This document shows, one piece after another, positions 2,804 through 43,735 of a stretch of 64,000 nt of DNA. The stretch covers positions 558,001 through 622,000 of the forward strand of contig BQFW01000008.1 in assembly GCA_020891255.1 (NCBI GenBank), read 5' to 3'. The number at the start of each line of letters is the position of its first letter. Positions within the stretch are counted from its first letter, which is position 1. The DNA comes from Entomortierella parvispora E1425. Lineage: Eukaryota; Fungi; Mortierellomycota. The position numbers were made by a program, and so were the translations under genes. The notes under the pieces are model-generated. The model was not told the DNA's origin. It saw only the letters and a list, made by a program, of their open reading frames with translations, and searched no databases.

Positions 2804-5092
2804 AGGGTCGATTCGGGGTATGGGAAGTAAACACGCGTGGGAGAAGAAGGAAGAGAAGGAGAGATGTAAAAGCTGTAACAGGGCTCAAAAGAGAAGAAGG
2901 GGGAGAGCGATTGAGCGAGGGGGGATGGGAAGGGGTGAAAGTAGAGAGTGGAGAGACAAGAGACGAGGAAGAAGAAAAAAGAAAGAAGGAGAAAAGAGGT
3001 AATGAGACGAGAAGGGTCATGAATGAATGAATGAACGAACGAACGAATGAATGGCATTCAAGTGGCGGGGGTGCACACCACAGGGCGATAAGACTCTGTC
3101 ACATCGCGCACGGTGCAGAGGTGTGCAGTCGGCAGTCGTCACTGTGTCCCATGAGGTCATATCAACTCTGCCTCTCACCTCCTCACCTCTTTATCTTCCC
3201 ATCCTCCCACTCTCCATCGATCCTCCTGCCCCCAAGGCCGATTGCGAGCTCGCTGCCTCGCTCGCTGCAGATCGATCTTCACCTGCATCGATGCTGTATC
3301 TCACCCCATGATGACATGTCCACGACCTATGGCCTCTGCATGACGACGACGCCCGTCCCCGTCCCTGTCACTCACTGGCGACTCGCCCTCTTATCCTCCT
3401 ATCTTTTGCAACCACCTTCCTTCACTCGTTACCCACCGACCATCGCGCATTGAGCGCACAATCCACAACCGACCTTTTTTGCCCTGCACCTGACACAGAT
3501 GATAGGACCACAGTGCTCGCCAGGCCCAGTCCGAGTCCTCTGTCCTACCATCGAAAGCAGTCTGCCCCTGACAGATGAGGGCCGAAACAGAACGTACGAC
3601 CGCTGTCGACACAGCTGTCCGCGTGTGATGACCGTCAATCGCGTCTACAATTGTTGACTCTGTGTGCTCGCGTACTCAGTGGACGATATTTGCCTAGGAT
3701 ACCTCAGCCCCTGCCTCCTTCATTCTAGCCTTCTGGAATAACCCCGCTGGCGACCTTACCAGTCCGGGGCCACTAAAATTCGTAATATGTGCCTATGTGC
3801 TTTCCACATTTTAAACGGAAGCATGGCGTGTACTTTCCACAGATACAACAACTGACGCCTTCCTTGAGGGGGTGGCGCTCAGAAAACATGAACTGTCTGA
3901 TACTTTACGCATGTCTTCCACATTAGCTCACCTCGTTTGATCTCAAACACAACCCTCGCCCCAGGCTGTCATCCCTGTGACCAACTTGCAAAGTGGAGTT
4001 GGACAAACGGACTTTACATGTAAATTACGGCGTCAGGACACGCTGGCACCAAAGACAGCAACAATTGGTCAGATGTTGTCAGAACGACGAACGACAGAAT
4101 GTGAGATGTGGCGCTTTTTCTATGTTACCCGGAGATCTTCCCATGGAGAGAAAGAGCTTTGAGTCTGTCTTCAGCAGGGTAGGGGTTTACATGGTACCGT
4201 ACCCTCCTTCGGCCTTCAGGGCACCAATTGAGCCCTGTGCGATTGCAAAGGGGTAAAAATAAATAGCAAGAGCGAATGCAATTTCGATCCCCCTGGGTGA
4301 TTTGCTGAAGTTTATTGCTGGCGTGCCATCTGTCCCCGGTACGCATTGATTGCTGCCAGCAAGCTATACATACCTGGAGGCAAGTACCACTTCGTCTCAT
4401 CGTTGAAAAGGACATCACATAGACCCCTGCTGATCAGGTTGTGGCAGACTATCGAGAAGGATAAAGACCCGCCGAGAGCAGTTCACGTCGAGGTTGACCC
4501 GGCAAAATGGGACGATCCACATTCACCTGCTGGCGTGCTGGGGGAAGGGAGGTTAGTGAGCTGGGTCACAGGAGCCGTTGGACCAGAGAGCACCAGGTCC
4601 AAGGGGAAAAGGGTCGAGAGAAAGTGGCACAAGGCACGAATTGTTCATAATAAATTGGAGAAGCTAGAAACAAACCTTCTTGCTTGGTGCCCGAGAGCAC
4701 TTTCACCCTGCAGTCTCCCATCCGCTTTCTTCGTTCGTTCTCGCTGCACTTCTGTCCATCATCCACGATGAAGAACGCTAGAGAAAAGACAGTGTGGATG
4801 AAGGCTCTTCGTCAGACAACCAGTTGTCTGCATGTTGGGTTTCGTCCATATCACCCAGGGTGCCAGTTTGGATTTTGTTTTCTTTTCTTTCTTCTTTGTC
4901 ACTCTCTTCCCCCCTGTCCCCAACTCCCGCCGTTGTCTGCCTGTCGTGAGGTCGCAGTATCCTTCTCTTCCAACTCCTCCTCATCCTCATCGACACCCTT
5001 CCCGCCCTTTCCAGGGACTTCCCTTCATCCATACCCTAATACCGCTCATCGCACCTTTTCAATCCCTTTGATCTGATAACAGGTCTCCTATA

Positions 5093-36900: not shown

Positions 36901-36935
36901 CCAAAAAATACAGATACGGAAAACGCAAAAGTGAA

Positions 36936-37008
36936 TGCTCTCTGGCAGGTTCGAACTGTCGACCTTCAGATTATGAGACTGACGCTCTGCCAACTGAGCT
37001 AAGAAAGC
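36936..37008 (-). tRNA. tRNA-Met(CAT), elongator, copy 1
   Basis: 73-nt cloverleaf GCTTTCT...AGAGAGCA with anticodon loop CTCATAA and T-loop TTCGAAC. G1-C72 and T54 mark it as elongator. T-runs follow downstream. Confidence 0.97.
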
Positions 37009-37028
37009 TTTCAGGGTTGAAGTAATTG

Positions 37029-37637
37029 TGTCGTGAATCAGACTGCTTTTATCCCCGCCAGCTCCGCGTCTGATCACATGACTTACGATCACCTGACCGC
37101 CGACACGCCTGATGAATGGACCCTTGTTGCGCGCCCTCATTGCACTTGTGCCGCGCGTCATCGTCGTTGACTATCACCAGGTCGACTACCCTCAACCGTG
37201 TATACTCACGAACGGAGCATTTCATGTTTCTCCGACATTAACCTACCAACCGTTGCCAATCAAAAGCTTGTCTCCACGCCGGTCGACCAAGCTCTTTGAA
37301 ACCTCGGACGTTAGGGCCCCTATTCCAGAATAGTCATAAGCCCTTCACTATTTATTTCCATAGTGTCAGCAGTATAGTCTCACTTCACTACCTTCAGTAT
37401 ATAAGTAGCTCTGTATCGAGACTTAGAACGGCATCCTTTCTTTGCCCTTCCATCTCGATTACAGGTAACCCTCTTGAGAACCCTATCAGTAGTAACACAC
37501 AGAATATCTTATTAAACATATCCTTTCTTTTGCCCTTCCATCTCGATTACAGTCAAGGTAGCTGACTGTGGTGCCCAGTGTAGAAGAACACGCTCGACAC
37601 ACCCTAAGGATCAGTCGTGATACCGAGAGTCACGACA
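37029..37637 (+). repeat. 5' LTR (609 bp)
   Basis: TG...CA with 8-bp terminal inverted repeat; TATATAAG at 37398-37405. By eye identical to the 3' LTR except one extra T in the run ending at 37531. Confidence 0.97.
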
Positions 37638-37641
37638 AATT

Positions 37642-37653
37642 TGGTAGCAAAGG
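37642..37653 (+). promoter_or_regulatory. Primer-binding site TGGTAGCAAAGG, probably for initiator tRNA-Met
   Basis: Begins 4 nt after the 5' LTR. TGGTAGC is complementary to the ...GCUACCA 3' end of eukaryotic initiator tRNA-Met. It does not match the adjacent elongator tRNA, which would require TGGTGCTCTC. Confidence 0.75.
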
Positions 37654-37752
37654 ACAGTAGCAGTCCTACCGCCACGCCCATCCAAAGGACAGTAGTAGTC
37701 CTACCGCCACGCCCATTCAAAGGACAGTAGTAGTCCTACCGCCACGCCATTC
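37649..37752 (+). repeat. 3 x 35-bp tandem repeat in the retrotransposon leader
   Basis: Units 37649-37683, 37684-37718, 37719-37752; consensus AAAGGACAGTAGTAGTCCTACCGCCACGCCCATTC. Confidence 0.95.
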
Positions 37753-37787
37753 AAGACGACCACCTTCCCTACCCACTTCCTTACATC

Positions 37788-38711
37788 ATGAATCAACATC
37801 AACACAACTTCGACGACGATATTGACGAGGAGCCCAACACGTCAAGCTATCACGCCGCCTCCACCTTCACCGTTCCCGAACCTGTGATCCACAATGATCG
37901 TCCCAAAAAGAACCTTTTGCCCTCGGATCATGAAACTTTCAATGGCACCTGCTCCCACCACGAGGCCCGAGCATGGTTGCTACAGACAGAGTTGATTGCA
38001 GACATCAGTGAGATTCCTAGACCGAAATGGCCCAGAGCCGCGATTGCCAAGCTTCGAGGTGACGCAAGAGTCTGGGGCCTGAATTACAACTCACTCCACA
38101 CCAATGCCACGTGGGACACTTTCTCAGCCGCCTTTTTAAGTCAGTTCAGCTCAGAAGACTTGGAAGAGACCCTTCGCAACGAACTCGATAGTGTTGTCTG
38201 GGAAAAGACAGACACCCCCAACACCTTCTTCCACCGTTTTCAGTTTGCTTTGATGCCTCTTGGTACCAATGTATCTGAAGGAGAAAAAGTACACGTCTTC
38301 AAGACCCGAAGTCCACAATTTTTGCGAAAATTTCTGATCGAACACCAAGTCAAAACCTGGCAACAAGTCCGCCAACACTGTGAAATCCGAACAGAGATGA
38401 GCACAAGCCTTGGTATCATTTCCCAATCCGCGCAGAACCGAATCAACCAAGCCAGACAAACGCCGCCGTCTCGCCCTTTTGTTGATCCATCACGCTTTGG
38501 TTCCCCAAGACTTTTCCAACACCACGCTGCTGCAACAGCCCCGCCCCCTCGTCCCTCTCACATTACTGGAAACCCCACTACTGGTTTTTCAACTGGAAAA
38601 CGCGTTAGTTTCTCTGGTCATCCGTTTTCACGCCCTCCAGATCGACGAGACAGCACCCAAAACCAAAAATCAAAGTCAAGGTCGTCGATCTTCGATGGAT
38701 ATGGACGTTGA
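37788..38711 (+). CDS. gag: Retrotransposon Gag, capsid part (frame ends before the nucleocapsid)
   Basis: Gag-type motifs AKLRGDARVW and TWDTFSAAFLSQF. The zinc knuckles lie in the +1 frame. Confidence 0.9.
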   Translation: MNQHQHNFDDDIDEEPNTSSYHAASTFTVPEPVIHNDRPKKNLLPSDHETFNGTCSHHEARAWLLQTELIADISEIPRPKWPRAAIAKLRGDARVWGLNYNSLHTNATWDTFSAAFLSQFSSEDLEETLRNELDSVVWEKTDTPNTFFHRFQFALMPLGTNVSEGEKVHVFKTRSPQFLRKFLIEHQVKTWQQVRQHCEIRTEMSTSLGIISQSAQNRINQARQTPPSRPFVDPSRFGSPRLFQHHAAATAPPPRPSHITGNPTTGFSTGKRVSFSGHPFSRPPDRRDSTQNQKSKSRSSIFDGYGR

Positions 38712-39126
38712 TGTGTTCAACATCGAGTGCCACAATTGCGGAGACAATCACAAGGCCGCAGAATGCCCCAAGCCGCAAACTTGTTATAACTGTGGACAGC
38801 GAGGACACTACAAACGCGACTGCCCTCAAGGAGGACAAAACCAAGGACGACCACAACGAAGGAATCGCCCAAACGTGAACATCAACATGACCCATATCGA
38901 TCCACAAGATTTCAAGCCCGAAACTTGCCCATTGATGGTCGTACCCCTCTACGTCGACGGTTGGCAATTCGACGCCCTTTTTGATAACGGCGCCAACGTC
39001 AACGTTATTTCTTCTCGTGCCCTCGAAGTTATCCGTGAAGAATCCCCGGAATCCATCCTCGATGAAAAACGAATCTATGAGCCGACCCCTGTACGAACAG
39101 CCCATGCAGGGAGACCTAGGTGCTAA
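38670..39126 (+). CDS. Middle retrotransposon frame: nucleocapsid (two CCHC knuckles) plus N-terminal half of the aspartic protease
   Basis: MDMDVD, CHNCGDNHKAAEC, CYNCGQRGHYKRDC, ALFDNGANVNVIS. In +1 frame relative to gag; the start coordinate is the inferred frame junction. Confidence 0.85.
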
Positions 39127-42100
39127 GGCACTAGGCGAAGTCATCCTTCGAGTTGTTATTGGAGAACACACCTGCCGTTTCACAGCCACGGTTGTTCCCG
39201 ACCTAGCTCACGATGTTTTTATTGGACTTCCATGGATGTTCCGCTACAAACCTCAAATCAATTGGGATCGCTACTCATTGACTTGGCAAGTCAATGGCCG
39301 AAAACACGAAGCCATCGCCAGATCTCAGCCCGCCAGTACCCTTCTGCAGAACGAACAGGTACCTGAACTTGCATATGTGCAGACGAACGCACAGCGGTTC
39401 TTACACACCATGGCCGCCGATGATACACAAGAAGCAGGAATCGTTTGGTTAATGAAAACCCACGTTCCAGAACACACCCGAGCAGAAGAGCTCATGACCA
39501 ACCCGGACCTGACAGTAGAACAGCAAGCTCAAATCGATGAGATAGTGAAGGAGTACCAGCAGGATGTATTCGCTCCACTCTCAGAGATGCCACCAGCCCG
39601 TCCCGGTTTCGATCACCAAATCCCCACTGGAGTAACAAGTCCTGTGGTCAAGAAGATATATAAGATGTCACCCCTCGAGCTCAAGACTCTCAAAGAACAG
39701 TTGGATGAGCTGTTACGGTTGGGGTACATCCAGCCCTCAACGTCGCCGTGGGCCGCACCAGTCCTGTTCGTCAAGAAGAAAGATGGAACATTGAGACTGT
39801 GTATCGACTATCGTGGACTCAACGCCGTCACGATCAAGAACAAGTATTTTCTCCCGCACACCGATGAATTTTTCGATCGCATGCGAGGAGCCCGTTATTT
39901 CAGCAAGTTGGATCTCCAGCAGGGATATCATCAACTTCAAGTTGCAGAAGAGGACAGACCCAAGACAGCGTTCTCTACCCGTTATGGACACTACGAGTAC
40001 TGTGTCATGGCTTTTGGTCTTACCAACGCGCCCGCGTCGTTTCAAGCCTTCATGAATACGATTTTCAGTAAAGAGTTGGATCAGTTCGTTGTTGTCTACC
40101 TCGATGACATCCTGATCTACTCCAAGACTTTCGAAGAACACTTGAAGCACATCCGAACAGTGCTATCAACGCTGCGAAAACATCACCTACATGCCAAGCA
40201 GAGCAAATGTGCGTTTGGATTATCCAGCATCACCTTCGTCGGACATGTGATATCCTACGATGGAATTCAAGTGGATCCAGCCAAGGTCGCAGTTGTCAAG
40301 AACTGGCCCACCCCAACCAACGTACAAGAGCTTCGTTCATTCATTGGATTTGTGAACTACCATCGCCGTCATATTTTCCACCATGCCGAAGTCACTGCTT
40401 GTCTTACAGACTTGTTGACCACTGGTCCAGGCCCAAACAAAGGAAAGTTGCGACCCGTGCCTACTTGGGGCCCAGTTCAACAAGCCGCTTTCGATGGAAT
40501 CAAAGAACTTCTAGCGACTACCCCTGTATTGTGCCTTGGACACCCCGATGAGCCGTACTATATGGAAACCGATGCATCCGACATTGCCACAGGAGGAGTC
40601 CTTTATCAGATGCACGAAGGCAAAAGACACCCAGTTGCCTATGAGTCACGAAAACTTAAGCCAGCCGAGAAGAACTACCCGGTCCATGAGAAGGAACTCC
40701 TCGCCATTGTTCACGCATGCAGAGCATGGCGCACGTTTATTCTTGGCGCCCCCGAAAACGTGGTCTACACTGACCATGCAAGTCTACGATTTTTGTTGAC
40801 CCAGCCACACCTGAGCCCGAGAATGACCCGTTGGGTTGAATTTTTGGCCCCCTACAACCTGTCGATCCAGTATAAGGCAGGAGCCACCAACATCGCTGCA
40901 GATGCGCTTTCCAGATTGCAAGTCAACAATGTGACAGCAGGACGTCACATCGACACTTGGGATTGGCCGTTGCTTGTCCCTGCATTTCTGGATGATGGTT
41001 CTTTTCCGCCCCATACCGATGGAGACACCAAGAAGAGAGTCCGCAAGGAGGCTCATAACTTCACGACTGATGACGACGAATTGCGCTACATGGTTGAAGG
41101 AAGAGCAGTTCCCTTCGTTCCGTTTGCAGAGCGCGCAGATCGTCTCATTGAGTTGCACACCGACATTGGACATCTTGGAGAGTCTGGAACGTTTGATTTG
41201 GCCAAGACTCGCATGTGGTGGCCCAGTCTTCGAGCAGATATCAAAGCAGTAGTACGTGAATGCAAGCCGTGTCAATTGGTCAAGCCCGGTGGTGACCGCT
41301 CTGTTGCACCGTTGCATCCATTGGCGCCAGCACGTCCGTTTGAGCGCTGGGGAATTGATTTTATTGGTCGCATGCCAGCCACCAAGAAAGGAAACCGTTG
41401 GATCATTACCGCAATCGACCATGCCACGAACTGGCCGATCGCAAGAGCCTTGCCAGAAGCAACCGCCGACGCCGTTGCTACTTTTCTCTATGAAGAGATC
41501 GTCTTACAGTTTGGCTGCCCTAGCGAGATCGTTAGCGACCGAGGAGCCAACTTCATGTCTGACGTTCTTCAACGCTATTTGGAGAAGCTGCACATCAAAC
41601 ACAAGGCTACGTCTGCTTACCATCCAAGGTCGAATGGAAAGTGTGAGCGTCTCAATGGTGTTATCGGACACATGTTGAGCAAGTATGTGGGTACACACAT
41701 CCACAGCTGGGATCAGTACCTGCACCAGAGTCTGTTCGCTTGTCGCGTACACATCTCTCAGCGAACCAAGGTCAGCCCATTTCAACTTGTTTATGGACTT
41801 GAACCCCGTTTGCCGCAAGATCCAGTACGCCCATTCTTGTTTGATTTTCAAGATCAAGACGATTTTGCAGAACATCGTCGCAAGACTTTTCGAGAAATCG
41901 ACGCCCTCCGAGAAAAGCACCTGCAGGCCCAGCAGACCGCCGCAGATGATATGGCCGCACACCATGAAGAGACACACACGGTCACCGATCATAAGTTCGC
42001 AGTTGGTGATTTTGTCCTGGTCAAGAACTTCGGCCGTACGAAGCTTCAACCCCATTTTTATGGCCCGTTGGAAGTGATCCGTATTACGCCCTTGTCGACT

Positions 42101-42670
42101 TATCAGCTCCGCTTGGGAGATGGTGAGTTGAAGACGGACTTAGTACACCAAGACCGTCTTAAGCGTGCTTATCCGCCAGATGAAGCATCTGCACGCCGTG
42201 CTTGGGTCACTAAGACAAAGCACACCATGGAGCAAGCCAACGACAACTCTGACGATGGTCTTCCAATTGAAAGCCGCACTGAGGAGGAACAGCGCGTGGA
42301 GGAGGCCCTCGCTCTTAGAACCGCCAATGAAGATTACCTTGCCCGTCGCGATCAACTTGGCACTTACGAACCGCCTATGATGGGTTCCGCCGCTGAAGCT
42401 GCCCGCGTGTACAGACAGGCACTTGCTGCTTCTGCCCCGAAGCCTCGTCGCCGTGGCCAACGTACTCGCGAACCCAGAGTCAATCAGTTGCAGGCAGGCC
42501 GAGGACGGCCTGAAGCCTGTGGGGGGAGTGTCGTGAATCAGACTGCTTTTATCCCCGCCAGCTCCGCGTCTGATCACATGACTTACGATCACCTGACCGC
42601 CGACACGCCTGATGAATGGACCCTTGTTGCGCGCCCTCATTGCACTTGTGCCGCGCGTCATCGTCGTTGA
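39112..42670 (+). CDS. pol: Retrotransposon Pol: protease C-half, RT, RNase H, integrase
   Basis: PR end VFIGLPWM; RT LCIDYRGLN, FSKLDL, YLDDILIYS; RH TDASD, KELLAI, TDH, ADALSR; IN H-X4-H...C-X2-C, WGIDF, SDRG, NGKCERLN and GPY/F. The start coordinate is the inferred frame junction; the ORF runs 142 nt into the 3' LTR. Confidence 0.95.
42521..42528 (+). promoter_or_regulatory. Polypurine tract GGGGGGAG
   Basis: Directly abuts the 3' LTR start at 42529. Confidence 0.85.
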
Positions 42671-43136
42671 CTATCACCAGGTCGACTACCCTCAACCGTG
42701 TATACTCACGAACGGAGCATTTCATGTTTCTCCGACATTAACCTACCAACCGTTGCCAATCAAAAGCTTGTCTCCACGCCGGTCGACCAAGCTCTTTGAA
42801 ACCTCGGACGTTAGGGCCCCTATTCCAGAATAGTCATAAGCCCTTCACTATTTATTTCCATAGTGTCAGCAGTATAGTCTCACTTCACTACCTTCAGTAT
42901 ATAAGTAGCTCTGTATCGAGACTTAGAACGGCATCCTTTCTTTGCCCTTCCATCTCGATTACAGGTAACCCTCTTGAGAACCCTATCAGTAGTAACACAC
43001 AGAATATCTTATTAAACATATCCTTTCTTTGCCCTTCCATCTCGATTACAGTCAAGGTAGCTGACTGTGGTGCCCAGTGTAGAAGAACACGCTCGACACA
43101 CCCTAAGGATCAGTCGTGATACCGAGAGTCACGACA
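42529..43136 (+). repeat. 3' LTR (608 bp)
   Basis: Direct repeat of 37029-37637. Confidence 0.97.
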
Positions 43137-43140
43137 ATTG

Positions 43141-43278
43141 GAAATCCGAACATCCCCATTCTCACTGGAAGCACCGAAATCACGTGAGCCGCGTCATGTC
43201 ACGTGAACATTACACGTGATTTCGGTGCTTCCAGTGAGAATGGGGATGTTCGGATTTCCAATTACTTCAACCCTGAAA
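43141..43278. repeat. Inverted-repeat core between the two tRNA-Met genes (arm to 43186, 26-bp spacer, arm from 43213)
   Basis: 43137-43186 is the exact reverse complement of 43213-43262. The remaining part of the left arm lies at 37009-37028, on the other side of the retrotransposon. Confidence 0.95.
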
Positions 43279-43351
43279 GCTTTCTTAGCTCAGTTGGCAG
43301 AGCGTCAGTCTCATAATCTGAAGGTCGACAGTTCGAACCTGCCAGAGAGCA
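43279..43351 (+). tRNA. tRNA-Met(CAT), elongator, copy 2
   Basis: Identical (73/73) to copy 1; T4 runs at 43357-43360 and 43364-43367. Confidence 0.97.
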
Positions 43352-43735
43352 TTCACTTTTGCATTTTCCGGTTCCGACTGCTAGACCTGCTACATCCTTT
43401 TGTCTGTTCGTTCACCGAGATTGACTCTAGTTTGAACCTTTGTCTTCTTTTTTTTTTGGCTAGTTTTTTGATGGCGGCAAGAGGTTCATTAGCAGGCAAT
43501 CAATATCCTTCCTAGTTATCGTAGAAGGGGTGGCGCTGTCCTTTATTTTCTTTGTAGTAGATTCAAGAAGAGAAGCAGGGGTTTCTGATCCCTGGGTTGC
43601 TTTGAAAGTCGACAAAATATAGTTTGTGGGTTGTTCAGGGCATTTTTGGAGGGCGAAGTGCTAGTTGAATGAATCTTTCTTTCAACTCCATTCGCGAACC
43701 CTACCTTCTACCTATAAAGAACATACGCTCGAACC

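Follow-up and report, generated by a model that had tools for sequence, protein, structure and literature searches.

The 64,000-nt stretch of DNA analysed here, referred to as the window, covers positions 558,001 to 622,000 of contig BQFW01000008.1 (assembly GCA_020891255.1) of the fungus Entomortierella parvispora E1425. The product of an open reading frame near the locus is 100% identical to a protein of E. parvispora. According to ARAGORN and Rfam the window contains only two tRNA genes, both of which are tRNA-Met(CAU). Because of G1, C72 and an ordinary anticodon stem, both would be read as elongator and not as initiator genes by standard tRNA rules. The two genes are oriented divergently and today lie 6,270 nt apart, separated by a long terminal repeat (LTR) retrotransposon of the Ty3/gypsy type (Table 1). 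Removal of this element together with one copy of its target-site duplication (37029-43140) restores an empty site of 342 bp, in which the two identical genes stand head to head in a near-perfect palindrome.

Each arm of the reconstructed palindrome is 158 bp long and consists of a 19-nt trailer, the 73-nt gene and a 66-nt 5' flank. Read outward from the spacer, 150 positions match perfectly, followed by a single mismatch (36924/43363, position +12 of the 3' trailer) and seven further matches, after which the similarity drops to chance level; gene and 5' flank together show no mismatch over 139 bp. The centre of the palindrome falls between 43199 and 43200. The palindrome is best when 37028 is joined to 43141, and the symmetry is lost if this junction is shifted by one base. 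A repeat search recovered the same arms as 36917-37028 / 43259-43370 (112 nt, 99%) and 43136-43186 / 43213-43263 (51 nt, 100%). Both the junction test and the arm comparison (157/158) thus agree with the original prediction, which had proposed this junction with a 26-bp spacer, identical tRNAs (73/73), mirrored 66-bp upstream flanks and arms of about 158 bp with one mismatch in the 19 bp past the 3' ends. The distance of 158 nt between the genes holds for the reconstructed site only. That the arms are a repeated mobile sequence is ruled out by their uniqueness: the 138 bp upstream of the right tRNA-Met gene occur once in the 38.9-Mb genome.

The palindrome is older than the insertion. On the left side, the 5' flank is split by the element into 20 nt and 46 nt, which match the uninterrupted right flank without a mismatch; since these pieces mirror the intact 66-nt flank and the element is bordered by a normal target duplication, the palindrome must have been in place when the element arrived. 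The duplication comprises 4 bp (ATTG), a small correction to the first reading. The insertion had been thought to break the palindrome, which it shortened but did not abolish: arms of 50-51 bp persist at 43136-43263, comprising 46 nt of flank, the duplicated 4 nt and a further base that matches by chance. Accordingly, the present-day sequence has arms of 51/51 and the reconstructed site arms of 157/158 around the same spacer. With DNA parameters, the 342-nt empty-site strand is predicted to fold into one hairpin of -209 kcal/mol, compared to -38 kcal/mol for shuffled sequences, which is consistent with the hairpin potential initially ascribed to it. The 128-nt remnant is still predicted to form a hairpin of -66 kcal/mol (-12.6 for shuffles), and the insertion can therefore be said to have truncated the close palindrome.

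Three CACGTG motifs (E-boxes) are situated at the palindrome centre, starting at 43181, 43200 and 43213. The innermost six bases of both arms are CACGTG, and the arms stop exactly there. Relative to the right tRNA-Met gene the E-boxes lie at -66, -79 and -98, and relative to the left gene in the empty site at -66, -85 and -98, positions that are typical for this genome (see below). The entire window holds eight CACGTG motifs, three of which are these. Today, the left gene is separated from all three by the element.

Table 1. Features of the tRNA-Met locus (positions in the window) and of related loci elsewhere in the genome.
Feature	Position	Strand	Evidence and remarks
3' trailer of left tRNA-Met, outer 19 nt of left arm	36917-36935	-	sequence comparison; mismatch to right arm at 36924
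Left tRNA-Met(CAU) gene, 73 nt	36936-37008	-	ARAGORN; Rfam RF00005, 60.3 bits; identical to right copy
Left 5' flank, gene-proximal 20 nt	37009-37028	-	last 4 nt, 37025-37028 (ATTG), are a copy of the target-site duplication
Ty3/gypsy LTR retrotransposon, 6,108 bp	37029-43136	+	repeat search; Pfam Retrotrans_gag, zf-CCHC, RVT_1, RNase H, Integrase_H2C2, rve (gypsy order); TG..CA ends
LTRs, 609 and 608 bp	37029-37637 and 42529-43136	+	repeat search
gag open reading frame	37788-38711	+	Pfam Retrotrans_gag, zf-CCHC
pol open reading frame	38981-42670	+	reverse transcriptase, RNase H and integrase domains (Pfam)
Residual close palindrome, 51-nt perfect arms, 26-bp spacer	43136-43263	.	repeat search; DNA hairpin fold
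Second copy of the ATTG target-site duplication, 4 bp	43137-43140	.	first copy at 37025-37028
Left 5' flank, inner 46 nt, split from its gene by the element	43141-43186	-	ends in E-box 43181-43186
Spacer, 26 bp, non-palindromic	43187-43212	.	middle E-box 43200-43205 inside; 1/13 mirrored position pairs complementary
Right tRNA-Met 5' flank, 66 nt, right arm	43213-43278	+	starts with E-box 43213-43218
Right tRNA-Met(CAU) gene	43279-43351	+	ARAGORN; Rfam; 73/73 identical to left copy
3' trailer of right tRNA-Met, outer 19 nt of right arm	43352-43370	+	sequence comparison
Glu/Glu pair	C12:97681-97970		perfect arms of gene + 59 nt, stopping at the E-box ATCACGTGAT; 52-nt spacer with TTAAGGGT
Pro/Pro pair	C12:1766838-1767104		perfect arms of gene + 44 nt; 59-nt spacer
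Val/Val pair	C14:160393-160647		gene + 34 nt perfect, then 9/12
Loci with TTAAGGGT/ACCCTTAA	L044, L045, L058, L059, L062, L063, L071, L074, L079-L084		upstream, -125..-35

To judge how unusual mirrored flanks of this kind are, the 66-nt 5' flanks of sampled tRNA paralogues with the same anticodon were compared. Their median identity is 29% (175 pairs), compared to 27% between families, and only six of the 175 pairs reach at least 70% identity. The rapid divergence that had been presumed for tRNA flanks is thus found on the 5' side. Since the flanks of paralogues are normally unrelated, an identity of 66/66 points to either a recent inverted duplication or arm-to-arm gene conversion, as initially proposed. 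The identity past the 3' ends, which had been counted towards the same argument, is nearly uninformative on recency and was dropped as evidence. The tRNA-Met gene has four copies in the genome. The copy on C1 has unrelated flanks. The unlinked copy on C6 has in common with the palindrome arms only the presence of upstream E-boxes and the 3' trailer, the first 16-17 nt of which recur there and on a metagenome contig (L086) that carries an identical tRNA-Met gene with an unrelated upstream region. Moreover, the trailers follow a genome-wide pattern, in which the first T-run begins at +4 to +6 and GC follows in 34 of 59 sampled genes (first 20 nt downstream). Because the same trailer is found at unlinked and metagenome copies and conforms to this pattern, it says little about age.

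The original prediction had proposed a genome search for further inverted tRNA pairs, and the arrangement proved not to be exceptional. The census searched the genome for two B-box patterns in inverted orientation, their spacing being varied stepwise, and used reversed patterns as controls. In all, 17 intact tRNA pairs in head-to-head orientation came to light, each with a gap of about 131-190 bp, and six of these pairs consist of two copies of the same gene; no such pair was present in the census at gaps of about 80-110 bp or 200-235 bp, and matches other than tRNA genes were as numerous as those of the reversed controls. Including the Met pair, 18 pairs account for about 36 of the 192 nuclear tRNA genes (~19%). 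Seven of these pairs consist of the same gene (Met, Glu, Gln, Val and three Pro) and the remaining 11 are mixed; the share of 7/18 compares to ~8% expected from a biased tRNA sample (P ~4e-4).

Perfect mirror arms extending 34-59 nt beyond the gene are found in three other same-gene pairs, Glu/Glu, Pro/Pro and Val/Val (Table 1), the centres of which were read from the 80-nt match stretches of the pattern searches; in the other same-gene pairs the flanks are partly or wholly diverged. In the Pro/Pro spacer there are two E-boxes, arranged symmetrically so that each gene has them at -68 and -85, and Val/Val has one central E-box within a 14-bp palindrome. The five mixed pairs that were fully read have spacers free of mirror symmetry apart from the motifs, which are either two central E-boxes or two TTAAGGG-type motifs in each pair. 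A central E-box cluster or the second motif is common to all head-to-head pairs read. One mixed pair, tRNA-Ser(TGA)/tRNA-Arg(TCT), is present on two chromosomes (C2:1554600-1554915 and C14:1354692-1354973; L062 and L063) with identical genes, largely diverged spacers of 186 and 152 bp and two TTAAGGG-type motifs in both, from which it follows that the head-to-head layout can be old. As a separate observation, tRNA-Pro(AGG) forms two head-to-head pairs 2.2 kb apart within C12:1764580-1767104, one with unrelated flanks and one with the perfect 44-nt flanks, and a third Pro/Pro pair is situated at C12:1961277.

The Glu/Glu palindrome, with perfect arms of at least 132 bp, is intact and illustrates that such structures are tolerated in this genome; the insertion at the Met locus is thus not regarded as the rescue of an otherwise untenable structure. 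In yeast, spacing and divergence lower the instability of inverted repeats (Ait Saada et al. 2023, PMC10164571). By analogy, the insertion should stabilise the outer 108 bp of the arms.

Inverted duplications of tRNA genes were also observed in convergent, tail-to-tail orientation, namely of tRNA-Lys (269-nt arms, 99%; L043:1585-1853 / 3960-4228) and tRNA-Ile (213+44-nt arms, 100% and 98%; L045:2973-3228 / 4375-4631), with arms separated by 1.1-2.1 kb. The identity of the arms ends (tRNA-Lys, and likewise tRNA-Met) or first breaks (tRNA-Ile) 18-24 nt past the 3' end of the gene, and a breakpoint near the terminator of RNA polymerase III (Pol III) may be preferred.

E-boxes are a common feature of the upstream regions of tRNA genes in this genome. 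Among 64 tRNA loci sampled, all of them free of LTR insertions, 39 carry at least one and 27 at least two CACGTG motifs between -120 and -40, and none was found in these loci between -250 and -121; downstream of sampled tRNA genes only two occur within 250 bp. The consensus is RTCACGTGA, present in one to three copies. A variant tRNA-Met gene on a related metagenome contig (L085) likewise has E-boxes at -110 and -87. Loci devoid of E-boxes frequently have TTAAGGGT/ACCCTTAA at the same distance instead, in one to three copies, which could represent a second class of upstream motif. Apart from one additional base, this motif is similar to a telomere-like or Tbf1-type site. In the head-to-head pairs, the shared E-box cluster may act as the control element of both genes.

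The retrotransposon was assigned to the Ty3/gypsy group because of its LTRs, TG..CA ends, 4-bp target duplication and a pol reading frame in which reverse transcriptase and then RNase H precede the integrase. It lies with its 5' end towards the left tRNA-Met gene, 20 nt upstream of the mature 5' end. A genome search revealed at least 12 copies of this young family with near-identical LTRs, each adjoining a tRNA gene, and 10 of 11 other complete copies are also flanked by a 4-bp duplication. For 15 LTR ends the distance to the tRNA 5' end is mostly 14-22 nt, with two at -6 and -34 (ARAGORN gene ends); the insertions span tRNA genes of 13 anticodons, and the 5' end of the element points toward the gene in 15/15. 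Two of the four tRNA-Met genes of the genome carry an insertion at exactly -20. In one copy, on C1, the LTRs are separated by 15.8 kb and the target duplication (ACGA) matches, for which reason it probably holds a nested insertion. Each LTR contains two decamers, ATCACATGAC and ATCACCTGAC, which differ by one base from the E-box consensus and occupy LTR positions 45-54 and 60-69 (37073-37082 and 37088-37097, and again at 42573 and 42588). When the element inserts at about -20, they come to lie roughly 65 to 89 nt upstream of the tRNA gene, the former place of the native E-boxes; near-matches of this type number just 9 in the 64-kb window.

Related alleles were searched for in metagenome data. 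The protein of a neighbouring methyltransferase gene has an 83%-identical counterpart on a 6.7-kb Logan contig. The head-to-head Met pattern gave 0 matches in the metagenome scan, and a 30-mer from the 5' part of tRNA-Met was found on three contigs, all with solitary genes; neither of these two scans yielded an empty allele.

Taken together, the Met palindrome is very probably a real inverted duplication that pre-dates the insertion and belongs to the head-to-head class. As a whole, the observations are, on balance, best explained by an inverted duplication hinged on E-boxes, followed by the insertion at -20 of a retrotransposon that targets tRNA genes. In this scenario, one tRNA-Met gene and its 66-nt upstream flank would have been duplicated in inverted orientation, with the inner junction made at two copies of CACGTG upstream of the gene. 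Two CACGTG copies with 26 nt between them constitute a short interrupted inverted repeat, since the hexamer equals its own reverse complement. On this repeat a nascent or resected strand could switch template or snap back, so that the intervening 26 nt became the spacer. With a symmetric E-box at about -60 to -100, the upstream motif cluster would be shared by the new copy, and the product would be the head-to-head layout of about 130-190 bp seen in the 17 other pairs. Subsequently, the Ty3/gypsy element landed at 20 nt from the 5' end of the left gene, parting this gene from the E-boxes and displacing 108 bp of the left arm by 6.1 kb.

The hinge itself, the formation of the inner junction at two E-boxes, is put forward tentatively, as possible rather than probable. 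In its favour, the 26-bp spacer is bounded by CACGTG at 43181-43186 and 43213-43218, and a short inverted repeat likewise marks the junction in Glu/Glu. Several points weigh against it. In Pro/Pro and Val/Val the perfect arms reach only 44 and 34 nt beyond the gene, short of the E-boxes, and a palindromic CACGTG at equal distances makes the arms of any mirror pair seem to end on one. The process described in yeast, origin-dependent inverted-repeat amplification (ODIRA), yields inverted triplications, but the locus holds two copies of the gene among the four of the genome, and a simple duplication would need a second junction at about +19 that the model leaves unexplained; this discrepancy between triplications and a 158-bp duplication is why the hinge is graded so cautiously. 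Furthermore, the single-gene ancestral state is presumed, and a role of the E-box at Pol III genes is putative. The broader notion that the E-box cluster serves both as a bidirectional Pol III control element and as the hinge for mirror duplication of tRNA genes is unlikely on present evidence. If it were true, tRNA genes would multiply through mirror duplications centred on the control element that they already possess, and about one fifth of the tRNA genes would descend from such duplications, later diverged or reshuffled into mixed pairs.

The identity of the arms might also be explained by an old pair, in which repeated arm-to-arm gene conversion spread from the genes into the flanks. This history is improbable but carries appreciable weight, as the flank identity in other same-gene pairs is graded and always anchored at the gene, which suggests conversion in these pairs: Val/Val has 34 perfect nucleotides followed by 9/12, Pro/Pro at C12:1961277 has 10/10 followed by 6/10, Gln/Gln is alike over 8 nt and then unrelated, and another Pro/Pro pair has unrelated flanks. 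The Ser/Arg pair with its diverged spacer on two chromosomes illustrates that head-to-head pairs may be long-lived, and conversion between palindrome arms is well documented (PMC3723533, PMC1803023). In the Met pair, however, the boundaries are sharp, the 26-bp spacer retains no residual palindrome and gene and 5' flank differ at no position. An E-box of 6 bp does not suffice to anchor homologous recombination where a conversion tract would end on the inner side. The sharp boundaries and the non-palindromic spacer tentatively favour a young Met pair. As the main rival, conversion concerns the age of the pair, not its origin.

An artefact of assembly or polishing, either a chimeric join through the repeated element or arms made alike by short-read polishing, is extremely unlikely. 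The E1425 genome was assembled from Nanopore reads with SMARTdenovo and polished with Nanopolish and Pilon, giving 19 nuclear contigs at 409x coverage with 192 nuclear tRNA genes (PMC8759367). An element with at least 12 near-identical copies could mislead an assembler, and reads lying wholly within a 158-bp arm map ambiguously. Nevertheless, the 20 nt left and 46 nt right of the element mirror the right arm exactly and are accompanied by the 4-bp duplication, which a false join would not produce. Because the split left flank and the target duplication reproduce the intact right flank, so that the arm is continuous across the element, a chimeric join is ruled out. With the arms 6.2 kb apart, fold-back read chimeras are of no concern; in addition, one mismatch is retained, coverage is 409x, each arm runs into its own unique flank, and comparable intact pairs exist at six other loci. 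Selection for the palindrome as such, by virtue of a cruciform, a hairpin transcript or a small RNA, is also very unlikely. The predicted hairpin is very stable, several pairs with perfect arms exist in the genome, and a survey of eukaryotic tRNA genes proposed head-to-head pairs as possible sources of small RNAs (PMC2888827). However, 11 of the 18 pairs are mixed, the five spacers read lack mirror symmetry beyond the motifs, the flanks of same-gene pairs vary from perfect to unrelated and the Met palindrome has already been split by an insertion. To our knowledge, no transcript across the palindrome centre has been reported.

The Met palindrome is a datable case in which a tRNA family grew by a small inverted duplication and a retrotransposon landed inside the product. 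Rather than a one-off, it neatly exemplifies a pattern that recurs in this genome. With ~19% of the nuclear tRNA genes in head-to-head pairs of 131-190 bp, the class deserves comparative study. It poses the questions of whether symmetric gene-external factor sites can serve two Pol III genes simultaneously, of whether short palindromic motifs seed inverted duplications, and of how perfect palindromes of 130-160 bp are tolerated in a eukaryotic genome.

Some elements of this picture have precedents. Ty3 of Saccharomyces cerevisiae and DGLT-A of Dictyostelium are Ty3/gypsy-type elements that insert about 15-30 bp upstream of tRNA genes; the Entomortierella family differs from them in its 4-bp duplication, its strict orientation (15/15) and its host among the Mortierellomycota. 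Same-isoacceptor head-to-head pairs, local duplication and palindromes kept by conversion are known already (PMC2888827, PMC3723533, PMC1803023). In the survey of Bermudez-Santana et al. (2010, PMC2888827), head-to-head homogeneous pairs, i.e. adjacent divergent genes for one isoacceptor within 1000 nt of each other, were found above chance and attributed to local duplication. The Met genes are divergent and of the same isoacceptor (73/73); their distance is 6,270 nt today and 158 nt in the reconstructed site. The pairs of E. parvispora stand apart by their narrow spacing of about 131-190 bp, the shared central E-boxes or TTAAGGG-type motif and, in four pairs, perfect mirror arms. In the literature searched, nothing relevant was found on E-boxes at tRNA genes or on such a pair layout at fungal tRNA genes, nor was a prior description found of the narrow spacing, the central E-box/TTAAGGG cluster, the arms ending on a motif or the share of tRNA genes involved.

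Palindromes maintained by gene conversion have been described on the human Y chromosome (PMC3723533) and in inverted gene pairs of C. elegans (PMC1803023). They have in common with the Met pair that inverted arms are far more similar than unlinked paralogues, and they differ from it in arm length, which ranges from kilobases to megabases compared to 158 bp. A length of 158 bp is near the lower limit of efficient homologous recombination. Alu repeats are about 300 bp long. The Met arms, at about half that length, differ in this respect from the fragile inverted repeats studied in yeast, to which they correspond in their perfect arms and short spacer (PMC10164571). ODIRA in yeast proceeds by template switching from the leading to the lagging strand at inverted repeats of about 5 nt, 40-80 nt apart, which are kept at the junction (Brewer et al. 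2024, PMC10766186). Unlike the kilobase-sized inverted triplications with a replication origin that arise in this way, the Met locus displays a 158-bp duplication with a second junction past the terminator; like them, it retains at its inner junction two short inverted repeats, CACGTG here and ATCACGTGAT in the Glu pair, 26-52 nt apart.

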